From sequence record LR745208.1: a DNA stretch of 64,000 nucleotides; one strand, given 5' to 3'. The position numbers and the translations under genes are program-made. The first letter of the stretch is position 1. The number at the start of each line of letters is the position of its first letter. This document shows positions 93 to 38,313 of the stretch, piece after piece. Under the pieces are notes generated by a model, which was not told the origin of the DNA, searched no databases, and saw only the letters and a list, made by a program, of their open reading frames with translations.

Positions 93-1535
93 ATGAAGGC
101 CAGGATCACATTATTGGACCCCGAAACCAATTCGGGGAAGGTTCACCAACTAGACTTACTCCATGCGGAGCATATCCAGTACGTCCAATCGTGTGTCAAG
201 TTGATGGTCTCCAACCGAATCTTCAATGTCCTCCCCTCAGGTCGGAAATCCTACTTCCCAACCTCGGAGATACTCTCTTCCCAACTAGTCAAAAACGCTC
301 AAGCTCAAGCAGTCGAGTTGGTTCATGGTTGGGTCAACGGAGTTTACGGTCGAACCCTCAAAGCCAAGATCACGGGACTCAAAGAAGACGGTACTTACAG
401 TGACTTGGAAGCCCTTCAGCTTTACACAATTGGGAAGTACCGGCTGACCCATGGAGGGAAATTTGGGAAGGGGACGATCTCTCAAGAACTCGTTGACCTG
501 TATTGGTCGTGGGTCTGGAATCCCGAGACTGTTGGAAACCCACCTACAATCAGCGAGCGATTTCCCCTGCGATTCACGGAGATGACCTGTACCTTCCGAG
601 AGTCCGGAGCATCTCATTTTCACGGTTGGTGGCTCAAGTTCTCCTCTTTGACTCGGTACAAAACCATCTTCCTTCCCCTCAAAGAGTCCCCCTTTCTTCG
701 TAAACGCAAGGATGTCCAGCTGACGGTCCTGGCCGCGAAGCGCCCCGACGGTCATTGGACCTTCCAATTCTCTGAGAAGTCAGAAGATCCGGTTCTCGAT
801 GGTTCGGCTGGCAAGTTGGGGATTGATGTTGGCTTGAATGTGTTGGCGGCCACTTCAAGCGGAACCCTCTATGGTCAACGATTTAAGGCCAAGTTCAACA
901 GGCTCCATAAGAGAGCTCAGTCCATCCGAGCTAACAGGAAACGACAAGGGTTCTTGGAGGATAGCCGTCGGTTGTGGGCCATGGAGCGGAGGCTCTCCGG
1001 CCAGATCAAGACGGCAACGAATACGGTAGCTAACCAGCTCGTGAAGAGCCACCCAAACACCACATTTGTGGTTGAGGATTTGGATCTCTCCAGTGCACCT
1101 GGGTCGAAAAGGTTTGCCTACAGGGCCCTTCAATCGAGTCTGGAGAGGAAAGCAGTTACGGAGAAGGTGAACCCGGCTTATACGAGTCAGGAATGTCCTT
1201 CGTGTCATTTCGTTTCCCGGAGTAACCGTCGGGGAGTAAAGTTTGTCTGCCAGAGTTGTGGCAGAAAGAGTCATGCGGATTTTGTTGGGGGATCCAATCT
1301 GCTCGGACGTTCCGGGGATAACCAGATTGGGTTGAAAACCTCAGTGAAGTCGGTGAAAGCGATCTTGGATGAAAGGCACCGCTTGCGGTTCAGATCACCA
1401 AGATCCCTGTTAGAAGGAGCTCACACCGATGAGCCCGAAGCTTACTGTGGGGGTATGGCTGGTAACAGCCTCACCCGCATAGCTCCAAAACAACCGATAC
1501 CCATTAAACCTCGCAAGAGGGATAAACGCGTATAG
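93..1535 (+). mobile_element. tnpB: IS200/IS605-family TnpB RNA-guided nuclease, no TnpA in window
   Basis: RuvC motifs LGIDVG, VVEDL, HADFVG; zinc finger CPSC..CQSC. Confidence 0.9.
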
Positions 1536-5516: not shown

Positions 5517-5963
5517 GTGAACATGAAAGCATGGTGGTTACGTGACATACTACCTGGAGGCTTCAGCCCAGTTGGCCCCACAGAATCTGTCCCCCAAGCG
5601 AAAGCATCAGGGGGGTGACCTAATGGGATACAATATCTGGCAAACCGAGGCAGACTTCAAGATAACAGCTGAGCGCCAACACTGGCGGATGCGGTTCCGA
5701 GATGAGATGTGCCATGACAACGTGGATCTTCACACCCGTTCCTGCCAGGAATGAGTCGGATGTGTGTCCGACGTGTGGGGGAGACCTATCCACCAAACAT
5801 TCCACTCCATGCCCCCGCGGGGAAGGTGTAACCATGTGGGCGATTGTGGAGACGTTTGAGTTTGATGATGAGAACGAGTCCCCGTAGCTCAGATGGACAG
5901 AGCGGTGAATTCCTAATTTACAGGTCACACGTTCAATTCGTGTCGGGGACGCTAGGTGAAACA

Positions 5964-7628: not shown

Positions 7629-7703
7629 GCCCCATTGAGACATAGCGGCCTAATGCTCTGAGCTTTAACCTCAGGATCGCGAGTTCAAATCTCGCATGGG
7701 GCA
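7629..7703 (+). tRNA. tRNA with UUA anticodon (putative ochre suppressor, Glu-like body)
   Basis: acceptor GCCCCAT/ATGGGGC, anticodon arm CTGAG-CTTTAAC-CTCAG, T arm GCGAG-TTCAAAT-CTCGC. Confidence 0.8.
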
Positions 7704-7727
7704 CCCGCCAAAGGTGTAACTACAATC

Positions 7728-33132: not shown

Positions 33133-33339
33133 ATGGAGAAGAACACGAACCGAGATCACGTCACTGGCCAGTATGACGTGGATGATGATGCCATGTGCAC
33201 CTGTGGCCACAAGCGTGGTGAACACACCTGTGGCAAGCGCGGTACGGGGGCCTTTGAGTGCGTGGTCGAGGGGCCCGATGGCATCCTTGGAAGCGCCGGA
33301 TGCGAGTGCATGAAGTTCAATAGGGTCAGCTACCGATAG
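33133..33339 (+). CDS. small Cys/His-rich protein
   Basis: CTCGH..H..C..CEC. Confidence 0.7.
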   Translation: MEKNTNRDHVTGQYDVDDDAMCTCGHKRGEHTCGKRGTGAFECVVEGPDGILGSAGCECMKFNRVSYR

Positions 33340-33617
33340 GCTTCACCGCTACTGGCCAGTGACGTGATCTCGCAGGAGAGGCATGCTTCCAGGCCAGACC
33401 CAATGTTGTCCTGTCGGACGGCCTTCACAGCATCCAGGTGTTGGCCCGACTGCCGCAGCAACACTGCATACAGGACACTCGGGGGCTCTGGTTAGAACCC
33501 GAGGGTGACCCTCGCCTTGAGGGCCCGCATGCCCTGGCGGGCCAGTGACAACTCACTAAAGTACACCTTGCTGGTGCTGTGCATGGGAAAGTAGACCAAC
33601 TTTTTAGTGAATTCGAC

Positions 33618-34939: not shown

Positions 34940-35057
34940 ACCTGCCTCAATGCCCACCGGGGCCAAAACCTAACCCAAAGGGCACCATCAGCAGCCTCAA
35001 GTTGACAAATAGTTCAATGGTTTCGTCAAGACCTATGGATTGGTCAGACTCCCAGAG

Positions 35058-35165
35058 CTATGGGTACGGGAGGCTCTGCAGGGAGTCCAGCAACTTCTCG
35101 GTCTGGGCCCGACGCACCTGCAACTGGGCCACAATTGCCTTGACGAGCTGGTTGGGATCCCGCAT
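35058..35165 (-). pseudogene. fragment paralogous to C-terminus of 37525..37923
   Basis: MRDPNQLVKAIVAQL vs MRDPNQLVKAVVAGL. Confidence 0.6.
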
Positions 35166-35298
35166 CGATCTCAGGACATCCGAATAGAGCCTAGCAGGAC
35201 ATCCCACCCCGCGCTGGCCTGAGAAGCCTCTTCGGGTTTTTCTAGGATGCCCTGCCAGGACCTACTACCCATCCCGAGCCATATGGTGTCCATCCCTG

Positions 35299-35345
35299 CC
35301 TTCAAATACCTATCGGTATGGGAGGGGGACTTTTTAGGGAAATCG
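35299..35345 (-). promoter_or_regulatory. sigma28-type promoter cassette
   Basis: motif copy. Confidence 0.8.
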
Positions 35346-35536
35346 ACATTGGAAGAGCTACCAACATCCTTTCCTCAGACCGAGCTCGCTCATCATGGTC
35401 ATCCTGAGGGGGTGGGTTCATGGTTGGGATCCTCGCTGGGGCTGTTCGGAATGTCAAGGGCGGAGTAGGCTCGAAATTGAAGTTGTAGTGCTCGTTGCGC
35501 TGACCCAGGGACGGAGCCCACACCCCTGGGTCTTGT

Positions 35537-35637
35537 CCACCGGACCCAAAACCACACCCAAATGACACCAATGAGACACATCGGCTTACGAAATCATTGG
35601 ACTTTTCAGAATTGGTCACTTTTGGGGGTCCAGGACA
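35537..35637. repeat. ~100 bp R2 element, full copy
   Basis: CCAAAACC left arm, TACGAAATCATT core, TTGGTCACTTTTGGGGGTC right arm. Confidence 0.8.
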
Positions 35638-36068
35638 GTCCCCACGGCGAGCGCCCCTGCAACCCGATCCCAGAAGGCCTCGGTATCCATGTCATCGAGG
35701 TGGATCCTGACCTTCGTGATGCCATAGTCCCGTTTGATGGTGTTTTCAGCGATCCTGCGGTACCCAGCATCCTTGCTCTTTAGGGCTGTGAAGACTTCGT
35801 TGGCTGCCTTCAGGGTGTCCTTGAACCCCCGTACCTCATGCTGGAACACCACCACGAGGTTGCGATCCAGGAGGGTACTCACCTCAGTCCTCCAATGGGC
35901 AACCCACTTGGTCTGGCCATTCTTCTCGGCCAGCTGAGCCTTGTAGAACTCCAACAGAGCCCCTCCCGTGTGTTCCTCCACCTTGTCCTTGAAGGTCTCT
36001 CGGCTGTAGGCCATGGCCCTAAGAATACGCGTAGCGACCCGTTTGGCTGTTGGTTTCAAATCCGGCAT
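35616..36068 (-). CDS. protein with KRVATRIL leader; ends in R2-encoded LDPQK
   Basis: 150 aa ORF. Confidence 0.75.
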   Translation of the reverse strand: MPDLKPTAKRVATRILRAMAYSRETFKDKVEEHTGGALLEFYKAQLAEKNGQTKWVAHWRTEVSTLLDRNLVVVFQHEVRGFKDTLKAANEVFTALKSKDAGYRRIAENTIKRDYGITKVRIHLDDMDTEAFWDRVAGALAVGTVLDPQK

Positions 36069-36273
36069 TTCCGTCTCTTTCCAAAGTCGCGGGTTGGTCC
36101 GACAGACCCTACCAGAACCTCAACCACACCCGTCCCCGCTGTAACCCGGTTCCAAATGTGTTTACAGGCCATGATGTCCAACAGGGCTTTAAAGGGCCCA
36201 ACCAGAGTACATGGTGTTGAGGTCCTGGTAGGACCAGTCAAGAAAAGTGCCCCAGGGGCCAAAGATTAGGAAC

Positions 36274-36408
36274 CAGTACAGTCCGGTGGGACTCGAACCC
36301 ACATCCACGGTTTACAAAGCCGCTGCTCTGCCTGCTGATCTACCTCAATGTAGGTTATCCTAGGTTCCTACACCCACTTCCACCAGCTGAGCTACTTGGA
36401 CTGTACTG
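36274..36408 (-). tRNA. tRNA-Thr(UGU)-like with 52 nt D-loop insertion
   Basis: TAGCTCAGCTGGT..AGAGC, arm GCGGC-TTTGTAA-ACCGT, T arm GTGGG-TTCGAGT-CCCAC. Confidence 0.65.
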
Positions 36409-36409
36409 A

Positions 36410-36612
36410 CTCGATGAAGAATCCCATGTGTGGCCAGGAATTGAACCCAGCTACGGTCAGTCCACACCGACCGTCCCCATCCAGGGGCTAGGGGGAATCG
36501 AACCCCTGCACATCCAACACACACATGAGACTCGGTCGCGGGCAGGGGAGCTGCACCCCTCTAGCTTCATCAGCACCCTTTCGGGCCCCAGAACTCCTGG
36601 GCGGTCCGCGTT
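36410..36612 (-). ncRNA. promoter-driven structured RNA with three T-loop-like hairpins
   Basis: GGTTCAATTCC, GGTTCGATTCC, AGGGG-TGCAGCT-CCCCT, GCCC-GAAA-GGGT. Confidence 0.6.
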
Positions 36613-36616
36613 GTTG

Positions 36617-36662
36617 TTACAAACTACTATCGGTACGGGAAGGTGACTTTTTAGGGAAATCG
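36617..36662 (-). promoter_or_regulatory. sigma28-type promoter driving the RNA cluster
   Basis: motif copy, no RBS/ATG downstream. Confidence 0.8.
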
Positions 36663-37331
36663 TCACCGACCCATCACAACAGCCCCACAGCCAACATTGG
36701 CCATACATAGGATGCCACGTACCCCTTTGCTGGAGTTGCAGGACTTGCAGGCGATCACGATGTTCTCAGCCACATTGGGGCCACCCTTCGAGATTGGGGC
36801 TACATGGTCCACCGTAGGTTTGTCCCCATAGGGCTTGAGGCAGTAGGCACACAACCCACAAGATACCTCCAGGGCCAGCTCAACCTCATCCCCTGTGAGG
36901 GTACTCTCCACCTTGGCTAGATTGGCCCGACGCTGCTGGCGGTTCACAGTGAAATGTTCTGGGTGGGATTTGTAGAACCGGGCATCCTTCGCCCGTCTCC
37001 TTTCAGGGTGCTCCTTGTTCCGGGCATTTTGACGGGCCCGCACTGCTGCCCTGTTAGCCTGATAATAAGCTGCACTCCGGACCCTATATTTTTCAGGGTC
37101 CCTGGCATCCTCCCATGCCTGAACTCGTTCTGGATTGGAGGCACGATAAGCAATAACCTGCTCCTTAACCTTCACCCCGTCCCTCACGTAGCGTGCATGC
37201 CTGAGAATGGACATACACTCTTTACACTTGTACTTGTGCCCATCTTTAGCCCGTTTGTTAAGGCCAAAATCGTCAAGGGGCTTCAGAGTCCCACATTCGG
37301 AACATACTTTTTTAGCTGCCAAGGCATCCAT
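36663..37331 (-). CDS. HNH homing-type endonuclease
   Basis: CSEC, CKEC; CAYC..TVDHV.P.SKGG.N..NIV.AC..CN..K. Confidence 0.9.
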   Translation of the reverse strand: MDALAAKKVCSECGTLKPLDDFGLNKRAKDGHKYKCKECMSILRHARYVRDGVKVKEQVIAYRASNPERVQAWEDARDPEKYRVRSAAYYQANRAAVRARQNARNKEHPERRRAKDARFYKSHPEHFTVNRQQRRANLAKVESTLTGDEVELALEVSCGLCAYCLKPYGDKPTVDHVAPISKGGPNVAENIVIACKSCNSSKGVRGILCMANVGCGAVVMGR

Positions 37332-37463
37332 GCCAATGTGTGCGCAATAGGGAGATTAGCTGCGGGCCCTAACCTGAGCCCCGCCAGGGACTTGAACCCT
37401 GACCCGAAATCAAATGCCCGGTACTGCTCCATCTCACCCTTCGAAAGTCGAATCTTCATGGTA

Positions 37464-37509
37464 TCCTCAATATCCTATCGGTACGTGGAGGCAACTTTTA
37501 GTGAAATCA
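37464..37509 (-). promoter_or_regulatory. sigma28-type promoter cassette
   Basis: motif copy, 14 nt spacer. Confidence 0.75.
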
Positions 37510-37524
37510 TATTCGGCCCCCAAT

Positions 37525-37923
37525 TCAGCCCTGCCCGTCTTCGGACAGCATGGAACTAATCAACTTCTCGGCCGTGTCCCGACGCTCACGTAACCCGGCC
37601 ACAACCGCTTTGACCAGCTGGTTCGGATCCCTCATGGGCCCGATATTGCTCACAATTGTGTGTTCCCCACACACGATGTAGTGGCCATCCCCAGTTGGGT
37701 AAATTGAGAACTCCTTCGTGAACCTCAGGCAATAGTGCCAGCCGAGATTTTCCCACACGTCCACAACCCACCCCCCAGTCCTCATCCTCTTCAGGAGCTT
37801 CTGGGCTTCCCGCCCAGCGGTTTCGTATGCCTCCCGGGTACACCCTCCCCCGCAAGCCGGAGAACAATAGACCCCCCCGCGAAGTACCGGTGTCCATGAC
37901 AGTTTCTTTGCAACAGGCTTCAT
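37525..37923 (-). CDS. hypothetical protein
   Basis: YCSPACGGGC, VWENLGWHY. Confidence 0.75.
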   Translation of the reverse strand: MKPVAKKLSWTPVLRGGVYCSPACGGGCTREAYETAGREAQKLLKRMRTGGWVVDVWENLGWHYCLRFTKEFSIYPTGDGHYIVCGEHTIVSNIGPMRDPNQLVKAVVAGLRERRDTAEKLISSMLSEDGQG

Positions 37924-37953
37924 TTCTTCAAGTCTCCAGTTTCAATGCCAGGG

Positions 37954-38313
37954 CTACCCGTACACGATCTCCCCAAACAGGGCACATTGGATGAACACGT
38001 CAGCCGTGACCATATCACAGTTGCTGATCAGGACATCCTTGAAATGGTCAGGGTACTCCCGGGCCATCACCTGAAGGCCCCTCACGATGGAAGCATGGTT
38101 CATCACACACTCCCGCCTGGGGTCCTCGTTCTCGTAGATGGTCACCCCCCAGTAGTGTGCCCGGTCGGGACAGCTTGTGGAGTCCACATGCCCCCAATAC
38201 CGGATTCCGCCAGACTCGATGGCACTGATCAGCAAGGACTCGATCTCCTCGTTCTCAACCTCGAACGTCACGGTTACGGATGTCTTGGGCTGCTCAACTT
38301 CACGCTTGGTCAT
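37954..38313 (-). CDS. phage hypothetical protein
   Basis: AIESGGIRYW..ADVFIQCALFGEIVYG. Confidence 0.8.
   Translation of the reverse strand: MTKREVEQPKTSVTVTFEVENEEIESLLISAIESGGIRYWGHVDSTSCPDRAHYWGVTIYENEDPRRECVMNHASIVRGLQVMAREYPDHFKDVLISNCDMVTADVFIQCALFGEIVYG

Follow-up and report, generated by a model that had tools for sequence, protein, structure and literature searches.

A tRNA-Thr-Like Phage RNA with an Extra D-Loop Arm and a Long Closing Helix, Tentatively Read as an Enlarged tRNA Mimic

Introduction

When a tRNA gene carries a structured insertion in its D-loop, is it an interrupted gene whose product is spliced, or does it specify an enlarged RNA that keeps the insertion as an additional arm? 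This question is raised by a locus of LR745208.1, an unannotated "uncultured phage" record of 485,034 bp. The DNA analyzed here is the first 64 kb of this record (64,000 nucleotides, called the window below) and corresponds to IMG/VR contig 3300025030_000038. An initial annotation had described a tRNA-Thr-like gene with a 52-nt structured insertion in its D-loop, and had proposed either a novel intron type or an enlarged tRNA mimic. The gene and its structured insertion are real, and every statement made about their sequence was confirmed on the minus strand. They belong to a 143-nt element, named element 3 here, which lies in a locus of about 550 nt without convincing open reading frame (ORF), extending on the minus strand from a promoter cassette to the ATG at 36068. 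We judged this finding against the tRNA set of the whole 485-kb phage genome, beyond the 64-kb window. Our preferred reading, to which we give a probability of roughly 0.4, is that element 3 is an unspliced enlarged mimic, i.e., a small RNA derived from tRNA-Thr(UGU) that would keep its extra arm, and not an intron-bearing decoder.

An Enlarged tRNA-Thr(UGU)-Like Cloverleaf

Element 3 keeps the core of a tRNA: U8, A14, G18, G19, A21, a T-loop of the UUCRANY type, and a seven-nucleotide anticodon loop with U33 are all present (Table 1). The D stem, GCTC (36392-36389) with GAGC (36328-36325), encloses 60 nt as first described, and deletion of 52 nt (36381-36330) restores AGCTGGTA. Both stems reported in the insert, GCTGGT/ATCAGC and (G)TGTAGG/CCTACA(T), are found, and the extra arm that they form sits between A14 (36388) and AGGCA (36333-36329), the latter still providing G18, G19, and A21. 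The irregularities pointed out at the outset are also there, namely a 2-nt bulge in the acceptor stem (AA at 36397-36396) and a C31-A39 mismatch in the anticodon stem (loop TTTGTAA), and CCA is not encoded. The extent of the acceptor helix had to be revised: the 11 bp initially noted do pair (CAGTACAGTCC, 36408-36398, with GGACTGTACTG, 36284-36274), but the true closing helix has 15 bp, including 2 G-U pairs (GAGUCAGUACAGUCC/GGACUGUACUGGUUC, 36412-36398 with 36284-36270).

Table 1. Features of the RNA locus and of its surroundings in the window.
Feature	Position	Strand	Description
Element 3	36270-36412	-	143-nt tRNA-Thr(UGU)-like cloverleaf, extra D-loop arm, 15-bp closing helix
Closing helix of element 3, 5' strand	36398-36412	-	GAGUCAGUACAGUCC; final 6 nt serve as acceptor positions 1-6
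Closing helix of element 3, 3' strand	36270-36284	-	GGACUGUACUGGUUC; pairs with 36412-36398
Direct repeat, copy 1	36383-36395	-	GTAGCTCAGCTGG; G7, U8, A9 and 5' half of D arm
Direct repeat, copy 2	36331-36343	-	GTAGATCAGCAGG; 11/13 identical to copy 1; copy aligned by Rfam and BLAST to ordinary tRNA D arms
Extra D-loop arm	36334-36387	-	54 nt; outer helix GCUGGU/AUCAGC, internal loop, hairpin GUGUAGG-12 nt-CCUACAU
Anticodon arm	36307-36323	-	GCGGC-UUUGUAA-ACCGU; anticodon UGU 36316-36314; C31-A39 mismatch; G27-U43
T arm	36286-36302	-	GUGGG-UUCGAGU-CCCAC; intact
Element 2	36419-36533	-	115-nt T-arm RNA; 14-bp closing helix GAGUCUCAUGUGUG/CACACAUGGGAUUC, 2 G-U
Element 1	36537-36610	-	Predicted four-hairpin domain, 5-bp closing; z = -1.0, not significant; weakly supported
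Element 4	36101-36241	-	~140-nt domain; 20-bp closing helix, 3 G-U, 36235-36216 with 36124-36105
Early-type promoter cassette	36627-36662	-	CGATTTCCCTAAAAAGTCACCTTCC-CGTACCGATAG; begins directly after the HNH stop codon
HNH endonuclease ORF	36663-37331	-	222 aa; free-standing, homing-type; Pfam HNH E = 1.3e-11; immediately upstream of RNA locus
Downstream ORF	35616-36068	-	150 aa; without promoter cassette of its own

The tRNA finders see this gene only in part. The Rfam tRNA model (RF00005) matches 36343-36285 with 35.6 bits (gathering score 29), over model positions 7-64 only, since the 5' strand of the acceptor stem is found 54 nt farther upstream; a full-length canonical match, with contiguous acceptor 5' strand and D arm, is not obtained for element 3. 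ARAGORN gives no tRNA call on the unmodified locus and calls appear after deletion of 52-54 nt, with scores (109-114) that fall within the range of the other tRNAs of this phage. Of 3,075 single deletions scanned, 369 gave a tRNA-Thr(TGT) call. When the acceptor, anticodon, and T arms were enforced, the D-region fold of the initial annotation was the best one (-52.8 kcal/mol, against -49.3 kcal/mol for the alternative), the free minimum being -55.6 kcal/mol. The extra arm alone reaches -16.6 kcal/mol in one dominant structure and is more stable than 198 of 200 shuffles (z = -2.67), and the fold of the whole element has z = -3.69 against shuffles. The structure of element 3 is real, beyond chance. 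As a side observation, the 11-mer GGTGTAGGAAC of the extra arm (36376-36366) has one other copy in the genome (L039:42759-42769), in the leader directly after another promoter cassette; about 5 of 200 shuffles reach its score, so that we treat it as a weak lead, not relied on, which may hint at the source of the insert.

Long Closing Helices Shared with the Neighboring Domains

Element 3 has a companion. Element 2 lies upstream of it, with a gap of 6 nt, and combines a T arm (CUGGG-UUCAAUU-CCUGG), a 9-bp hairpin, and an internal T-arm-like hairpin (GGGG-UUCGAUU-CCCC), similar to the variable loop and T arm of element 3 (1/300 shuffles). Its fold has z = -4.2, and none of 200 shuffles is as stable. 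A T arm with a closing helix of at least 9 bp in tRNA register occurs twice in the 485 kb, in elements 2 and 3, and both RNAs open with GAGUC and close with GRUUC. Moreover, three consecutive domains (elements 2, 3, and 4) are closed by helices of 14, 15, and 20 bp, each with G-U pairs: on the minus strand, the non-Watson-Crick positions of these helices (2, 2, and 3) are G-U in 7 cases out of 7. To judge from the sequence, such all-G-U mismatches fit selection on an RNA whose transcription follows the local direction. None of the 36 canonical phage tRNAs has more than 3 bp of leader-trailer pairing past its acceptor stem.

The other T-loop motifs of the window (6587, 26483, 37388, and 58269) have no closing helix of at least 9 bp in tRNA register. 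A deletion scan of these four motifs gave no tRNA for three of them and, for the region of 58269, near-threshold ARAGORN calls, up to 108.9. The motif at 37388 lies within a 58-aa ORF. A minihelix of acceptor and T-arm type (window 37377-37425, minus strand), with a weak mascRNA-like Rfam match (E = 0.13), is found inside this 58-aa ORF, which overlaps the start of the HNH ORF; it is probably due to chance.

Is the Insert an Intron?

Two 13-nt imperfect repeat copies (GTAGCTCAGCTGG/GTAGATCAGCAGG) flank the insert, 52 nt apart, and because of them its borders are ambiguous. The in-register D-loop deletion of 52 nt gives an ARAGORN score of 109.2, while the deletion of 53-54 nt between acceptor positions 6 and 7/8 gives the top score (113.7); the acceptor stem is then perfect, and the D stem has a single A-G mismatch. 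Removing 53-54 nt thus leaves a near-perfect cloverleaf, as expected if the insert were a true intron, cut at both borders by a protein endonuclease not guided by a bulge-helix-bulge (BHB), to leave a 2',3'-cyclic phosphate and a 5'-OH, the exons being joined into a canonical tRNA-Thr by the phage RtcB. The search for a ligase and an endonuclease that had been suggested with the first description answered one half of this scheme: the phage does encode a full-length RtcB RNA ligase (L047:19175-20341, i.e., genome 483,175-484,341; Pfam RtcB 379 bits; 46% identity to E. coli RtcB), but no splicing endonuclease was identified in a non-exhaustive screen of the proteome. In addition, RtcB genes in huge phages are generally read as (tRNA) repair enzymes (PMC7162821). 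Near the RtcB gene lie a GroEL-type chaperonin and a SET-domain ORF.

The insert itself speaks against splicing. In a BHB motif, the exon-intron borders form a 4-bp helix with a 3-nt bulge on either side; the strict scan gave one candidate, incompatible with the tRNA, and the relaxed candidates miss both border pairs. Hence, the earlier remark that no clear BHB is seen holds at either possible border pair. The alternative 54-nt "intron" taken alone has no special structure (z = -0.39). No self-cleaving ribozyme (hammerhead, twister, pistol, hatchet, or others) was matched in Rfam at E up to 10 over 35000-38000, and no Rfam intron match was found at E up to 10. Finally, splicing would not restore the Thr acceptor pairs (see below), and a canonical copy exists. 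We consider splicing by proteins very improbable.

The comparison with known introns goes in the same direction. As in archaeal non-canonical (BHB) tRNA introns, an insert of some tens of nucleotides lies at a non-anticodon position, and RtcB, the ligase of that pathway, is phage-encoded. The differences are the missing BHB, a host that looks bacterial, and the splicing endonuclease, which our non-exhaustive proteome screen did not identify; the archaeal examples returned by our control scan (L137 and L156) also look different from element 3. The phage host appears to be bacterial, as the GroEL-type chaperonin and the Shine-Dalgarno leaders suggest. Bacterial and phage group I introns likewise interrupt bacterial-type tRNA genes, often with homing endonucleases, but they are self-splicing, measure at least 200 nt, and lie in the anticodon loop, whereas the insert of element 3 measures 52-54 nt and is placed within the D arm or ahead of it.

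Other classes of RNA were also considered and rejected. ARAGORN finds no tmRNA, and the Rfam tmRNA matches (13.3 and 6.8 bits) cover T-arm hairpins only. A HEARO/IscB-type guide RNA was set aside with an HNH protein of 222 aa only and no Rfam match, and a YrlA or Y RNA with no Rfam match and no TROVE (Ro60) domain among the 26 ORFs scanned. A protein-coding explanation of the locus was rejected too, the small ORFs that overlap it matching no NCBIfam family.

Decoding or Mimicry

Element 3 could also be a working tRNA-Thr(UGU) with a permanent D-loop arm. RNase P and 3' trimming would open the helix, CCA would be added, and the tRNA would decode ACA and ACG early in infection. The insert does not tie up A14, G18, G19, A21, or the T-loop, and the absence of CCA is normal here, since none of the phage tRNAs has an encoded CCA. 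However, about 36 ordinary tRNAs are found at 141-201 kb of the phage genome, including tRNA-Thr(TGT), (CGT), and (GGT), so that a canonical tRNA-Thr(UGU) gene is already available (L041:11081-11153, 64.9 bits). The identity elements of threonyl-tRNA synthetase (ThrRS) are acceptor-stem pairs and the anticodon, in sets that differ between species (PMC9976931). Element 3 has the UGU anticodon, but its pairs 1-72 and 2-71 (C1-G72 and A2-U71) are unlike those of the three canonical phage Thr tRNAs (G1-C72 and C2-G71 in 3/3). The AA bulge in the acceptor stem and the 8-bp pairing of leader and trailer, which is absent from the 36 canonical phage tRNAs, also argue against decoding, and the phage encodes no ThrRS homologue (thrS). 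This makes decoding improbable in our view.

Other tRNA genes with a hairpin in the D-loop do exist. We found D-loop-hairpin genes for tRNA-Phe(GAA) (L012:6501-6618, viral; L083:2834-2946; and L172) and for tRNA-Gly(CCC) (L013/L027), which speak for the decoding alternative. The bodies of the three tRNA-Phe(GAA) genes are identical and their D-loop hairpins differ, with compensating changes, which shows that such a hairpin can be maintained. One of them (L083) belongs to the isolate genome of Dysgonomonas mossii DSM 22836, where the tRNA-Phe lies near a Schlafen AlbA_2 gene. In our searches of the literature on phage tRNA inserts and mimics, no account of such genes came up. Like element 3, they have a cloverleaf and a stable hairpin, placed between G19 and A21, and all were missed by ARAGORN. 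They differ from element 3 in that their acceptor stem has the normal 7 bp and in that they lack a leader-trailer helix, a bulge, and a flanking D-arm repeat; their sequences are unrelated to that of element 3.

Between the two possibilities first put forward, a novel intron type and an enlarged tRNA mimic, the second is the better fit, the intron having no positive support (no BHB, no ribozyme, no group I intron, and a host that looks bacterial). The mimic fits better with the kept core, the long helix shared with an adjacent T-arm RNA, the promoter cassette, the canonical tRNA-Thr(UGU) elsewhere in the genome, the missing Thr pairs, and the bulge in the acceptor stem.

The Locus and Its Promoter Cassette

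The locus opens with a promoter cassette (36662-36627), after which comes structured RNA, and not the usual Shine-Dalgarno sequence and ATG. The cassette consensus is CGATTTCnCTAAAAAGT-N8-CGTRCCGATAG, about 45 nt, then GGTATTGAGG, a few bases, and ATG. In the window, its core motif is matched 28 times, where 0.29 matches would be expected. Genome-wide, we counted 43 cassettes (e.g., window 1625, 11143, 14294, 36637(-), and 37485(-)), most of them within the first ~120 kb; they point the same way as the local genes, and nearly all are followed by GGTATTGAGG-N-ATG. The canonical tRNA clusters of the phage have no cassette. In IMG/VR, the cassette is essentially specific to this phage, the two outside matches being single ones on other contigs and probably due to chance.

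In the mimic reading, the cassette would drive the transcription, early in infection, of the ~550-nt stretch. The domains would be cut from the primary transcript at or near the long helices, by double-strand-specific cleavage and/or by tRNA end-processing enzymes. Element 3 would then persist as a stable L-shaped RNA, with the UGU anticodon loop and the elbow (A14, G18, G19, A21, and the T-loop) exposed. Since the helix would bury its acceptor end, it would not be aminoacylated, and it could bind proteins that recognize the tRNA shape or the anticodon loop of tRNA-Thr, thus acting as a decoy or a sponge. Downstream of element 3, the region of element 4 (36269-36069) folds with z = -2.36 (1/200 shuffles as stable), and element 4 is a candidate double-strand RNA processing site ahead of the 150-aa ORF, which is probably co-transcribed with the RNAs.

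Another possible role is that of a cis-acting leader: the tRNA-Thr look-alike would bind ThrRS, RNase P, or another tRNA-binding protein and control the stability or translation of the mRNA of the 150-aa ORF, in the manner of the thrS operator. The ORF (36068-35616) does lie downstream of the RNAs, without its own cassette, and mimicry of the tRNA-Thr anticodon arm in a 5' untranslated region is an established mechanism (PMC9976931). Nevertheless, element 3 ends about 200 nt before the start codon, with another closed domain in between; the homologues of this ORF in nine relatives have no such leader, and the phage encodes no ThrRS. We therefore hold a leader function to be highly improbable.

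More generally, YrlA and the thrS operator are non-decoding RNAs that copy the tRNA shape or the tRNA-Thr anticodon arm to bind a protein, which is what we propose for element 3. The 5' and 3' ends of YrlA form a stem at the anticodon side and its partner is Ro60, whereas element 3 gives no YrlA match in Rfam; the thrS operator adjoins the ribosome binding site of thrS, a gene that this phage does not have.

Likeness to the T4 Species 1 and 2 RNAs

The closest design that we could find is that of phage T4, where RNAD (species 2) and RNAC (species 1) are tandem small RNAs separated by 6 nt, the shorter one first, downstream of a free-standing homing endonuclease. The order in T4 is the segB homing endonuclease, tRNA-Arg, rnaD (119 nt), 6 nt, and rnaC (139 nt); here, it is the HNH endonuclease, element 1, element 2 (115 nt), 6 nt, and element 3 (143 nt). 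T4 rnaC also combines a canonical T arm with an acceptor-like closing stem that has no CCA, and a hairpin of about 60 nt takes the D-arm position. The T4-type layout, i.e., tandem RNAs of ~120 and ~140 nt next to a homing endonuclease, the longer one with a T arm and an acceptor-like stem, is thus found in this phage.

The two pairs differ in several respects. T4 RNAC is faintly tRNA-like in Rfam (17.5 bits to tRNA-Sec) and has no recognizable anticodon loop, whereas element 3 reaches 35.6 bits and has a UGU loop. The T4 pair ends a real tRNA cluster and is expressed late, while the locus described here stands alone behind an early-type cassette, at least 100 kb from the tRNA clusters. Moreover, the T4 pair does not have the 14-15-bp closing helices of elements 2 and 3. 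We read this likeness as an analogy of design, not as membership in the same family of RNAs.

Origin of the Locus and Weight of the Evidence

The imperfect direct repeat points, at the level of the sequence, to a partial 5' duplication as the origin of the insert, and in our scheme element 3 would have arisen in this way from a tRNA gene. We scanned viral and cellular collections for genes in which the 5' half of the D-loop is separated from the 3' half by 35-65 nt. A 5' tRNA fragment (acceptor strand and D arm) just upstream of a complete tRNA accounts for 27 of the 38 viral matches and 110 of the 122 cellular ones; such fragments dominate the scan, and partial 5' duplication is therefore a frequent event. 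Many of these upstream fragments (L002-L038 and L082-L201) come from Patescibacteria genomes. Element 3 is unlike such duplications: its downstream copy comes without an acceptor strand, and it is the upstream strand that pairs with the 3' end, with extra pairs added. The scan also gave a minority of true internal insertions, in which the acceptor stem is normal; the D-loop-hairpin genes for tRNA-Phe and tRNA-Gly described above are of this kind. Two other origins were rejected, that of a recent paralogue of the phage's own tRNA-Thr, element 3 not being a close copy of any phage Thr tRNA, and that of an attP copy of a host tRNA, no cellular tRNA being matched.

The same facts raise the question of a non-functional relic, in which partial duplication, and repair around a mobile HNH cassette, would have rearranged pieces of tRNA genes; these would be junk in a long leader, if transcribed at all. 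The direct repeat that flanks the insert and the very common partial 5' tRNA duplications agree with it, as do the C-A mismatch in the anticodon stem and, in element 2, what may be a stray copy of a variable-loop and T-arm segment. Variation within the phage adds to this. Look-ups of exact proteins returned other assemblies of the same phage, three identical and one (L207) with 4 single-nucleotide polymorphisms (SNPs) in 3.2 kb: two of these, both C-to-A (36546 and 36540), lie in element 1, where they break predicted pairs without compensation in a domain that is not significantly structured, and the others lie in the HNH ORF and in a 132-aa ORF. The presence of the locus in one phage only, and its absence from nine relatives, also agree with a relic. 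On the other hand, decay does not create 7-8 extra base pairs past the acceptor stem on two neighbors that share the same GAGUC/GRUUC ends, nor would it leave G-U at 7 of 7 non-Watson-Crick positions on the transcribed strand; the folds of the extra arm and of element 2 are far more stable than those of shuffles, and the locus has its own promoter cassette. We regard a relic as unlikely, though it deserves to be kept in mind.

We looked for relatives of element 3 in several ways. An exact 38-mer covering the anticodon and T arms retrieved only the same phage in IMG/VR. A degenerate pattern of anticodon loop and T-loop gave nothing in 185,579 species genomes and, in the JGI metagenomes, one 100% identical contig, the rest being unrelated tRNA-Thr genes and att-like 3' halves. 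The flanking proteins brought nothing useful from IMG/VR and GenBank phages. Homologues of the 150-aa ORF, with 50-68% identity, are carried by other large phage contigs, and since nine relatives do not have the locus, the HNH gene and the RNA locus are a lineage-specific addition. One related contig of 407 kb (L211:1540-2320) has, upstream of its homologue of the 150-aa ORF, a CRISPR-like array with about 11 copies of a 36-nt repeat, GTCGTGGTCTGGTGGGCTCCACGCAGCCTCTCAAAT, and unique spacers.

Several points weigh against the reading of element 3 as a mimic. No tRNA-like RNA is found upstream of the homologue of the 150-aa ORF in the nine related contigs that we fetched, so that the locus is recent and could be selectively neutral. 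The L207 variant has 0 SNPs in elements 2-4, the other assemblies are identical in this region, and the searches above gave no independent orthologue. Helices of 14-15 bp with 2 G-U pairs are expected by chance, according to our estimate, about 0.5-2 times each per 64 kb; the weight of the helix argument rests on the register with the T arms, the clustering, and the all-G-U mismatches on the transcribed strand. As for the T4 precedent, the similar sizes and spacing may be a coincidence: there is no homology to T4 rnaC or rnaD, a distant blastn search of 50,697 phage records with 36200-36650 gave tRNA genes only, and T4 RNAC and RNAD have no assigned function themselves (PMC3014915, PMC9697503).

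Other Features of the Phage

The analysis of the whole genome brought several observations that concern its tRNAs. The early region, which is far removed from the main tRNA clusters, contains a tRNA-Arg(CCT) (window 5878-5952, plus strand). It also holds a tRNA with a TTA anticodon, which would read UAA (window 7629-7705, plus strand), with an Rfam score of 29.5 bits, barely over the gathering score. ARAGORN calls a tRNA with a four-base anticodon (ttta) at L040:28332-28406 (genome ~142.3 kb), which has an Rfam tRNA score of 50.7 bits. The tRNA-Ile with a 210-nt intron that ARAGORN calls at L041:3806-4092 was rejected, with no group I match in Rfam.

Two further features of the window are independent of tRNAs. 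A 480-aa ORF (93-1535, plus strand) has OrfB_IS605 and Cas12f1-like TNB domains, which are those of the TnpB-like RNA-guided nuclease family. A perfect 23-bp inverted repeat, CGAGATCACGTCACTGGCCAGTA (33151-33173 and 33350-33372), spans 222 bp; it has no G-U pairs and is therefore a DNA-level palindrome.

What an Enlarged tRNA Mimic Would Mean

Phages have been known to encode tRNA look-alikes ever since the T4 species 1 and 2 RNAs were described, and, to our knowledge, none has an assigned function. Element 3 occurs in one phage lineage only, and its importance is limited until its expression is shown. Were it, or any of the tRNA genes with a D-loop hairpin, to be spliced or to decode with the arm in place, the rules of bacterial tRNA architecture would widen. 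If the insert were a protein-spliced intron, no tRNA intron removed without self-splicing would have been known before it outside archaea and eukaryotes, and the tRNA-Phe and tRNA-Gly genes with a D-loop hairpin might belong to the same class. These genes also show that standard tRNA finders miss tRNA genes with a D-loop hairpin, a few of which exist in phage contigs and bacterial genomes. Finally, element 3 keeps a readable identity, with its Thr UGU loop, its intact elbow, and its buried acceptor end, and the hypotheses of binding and of decoy are thus directly testable.

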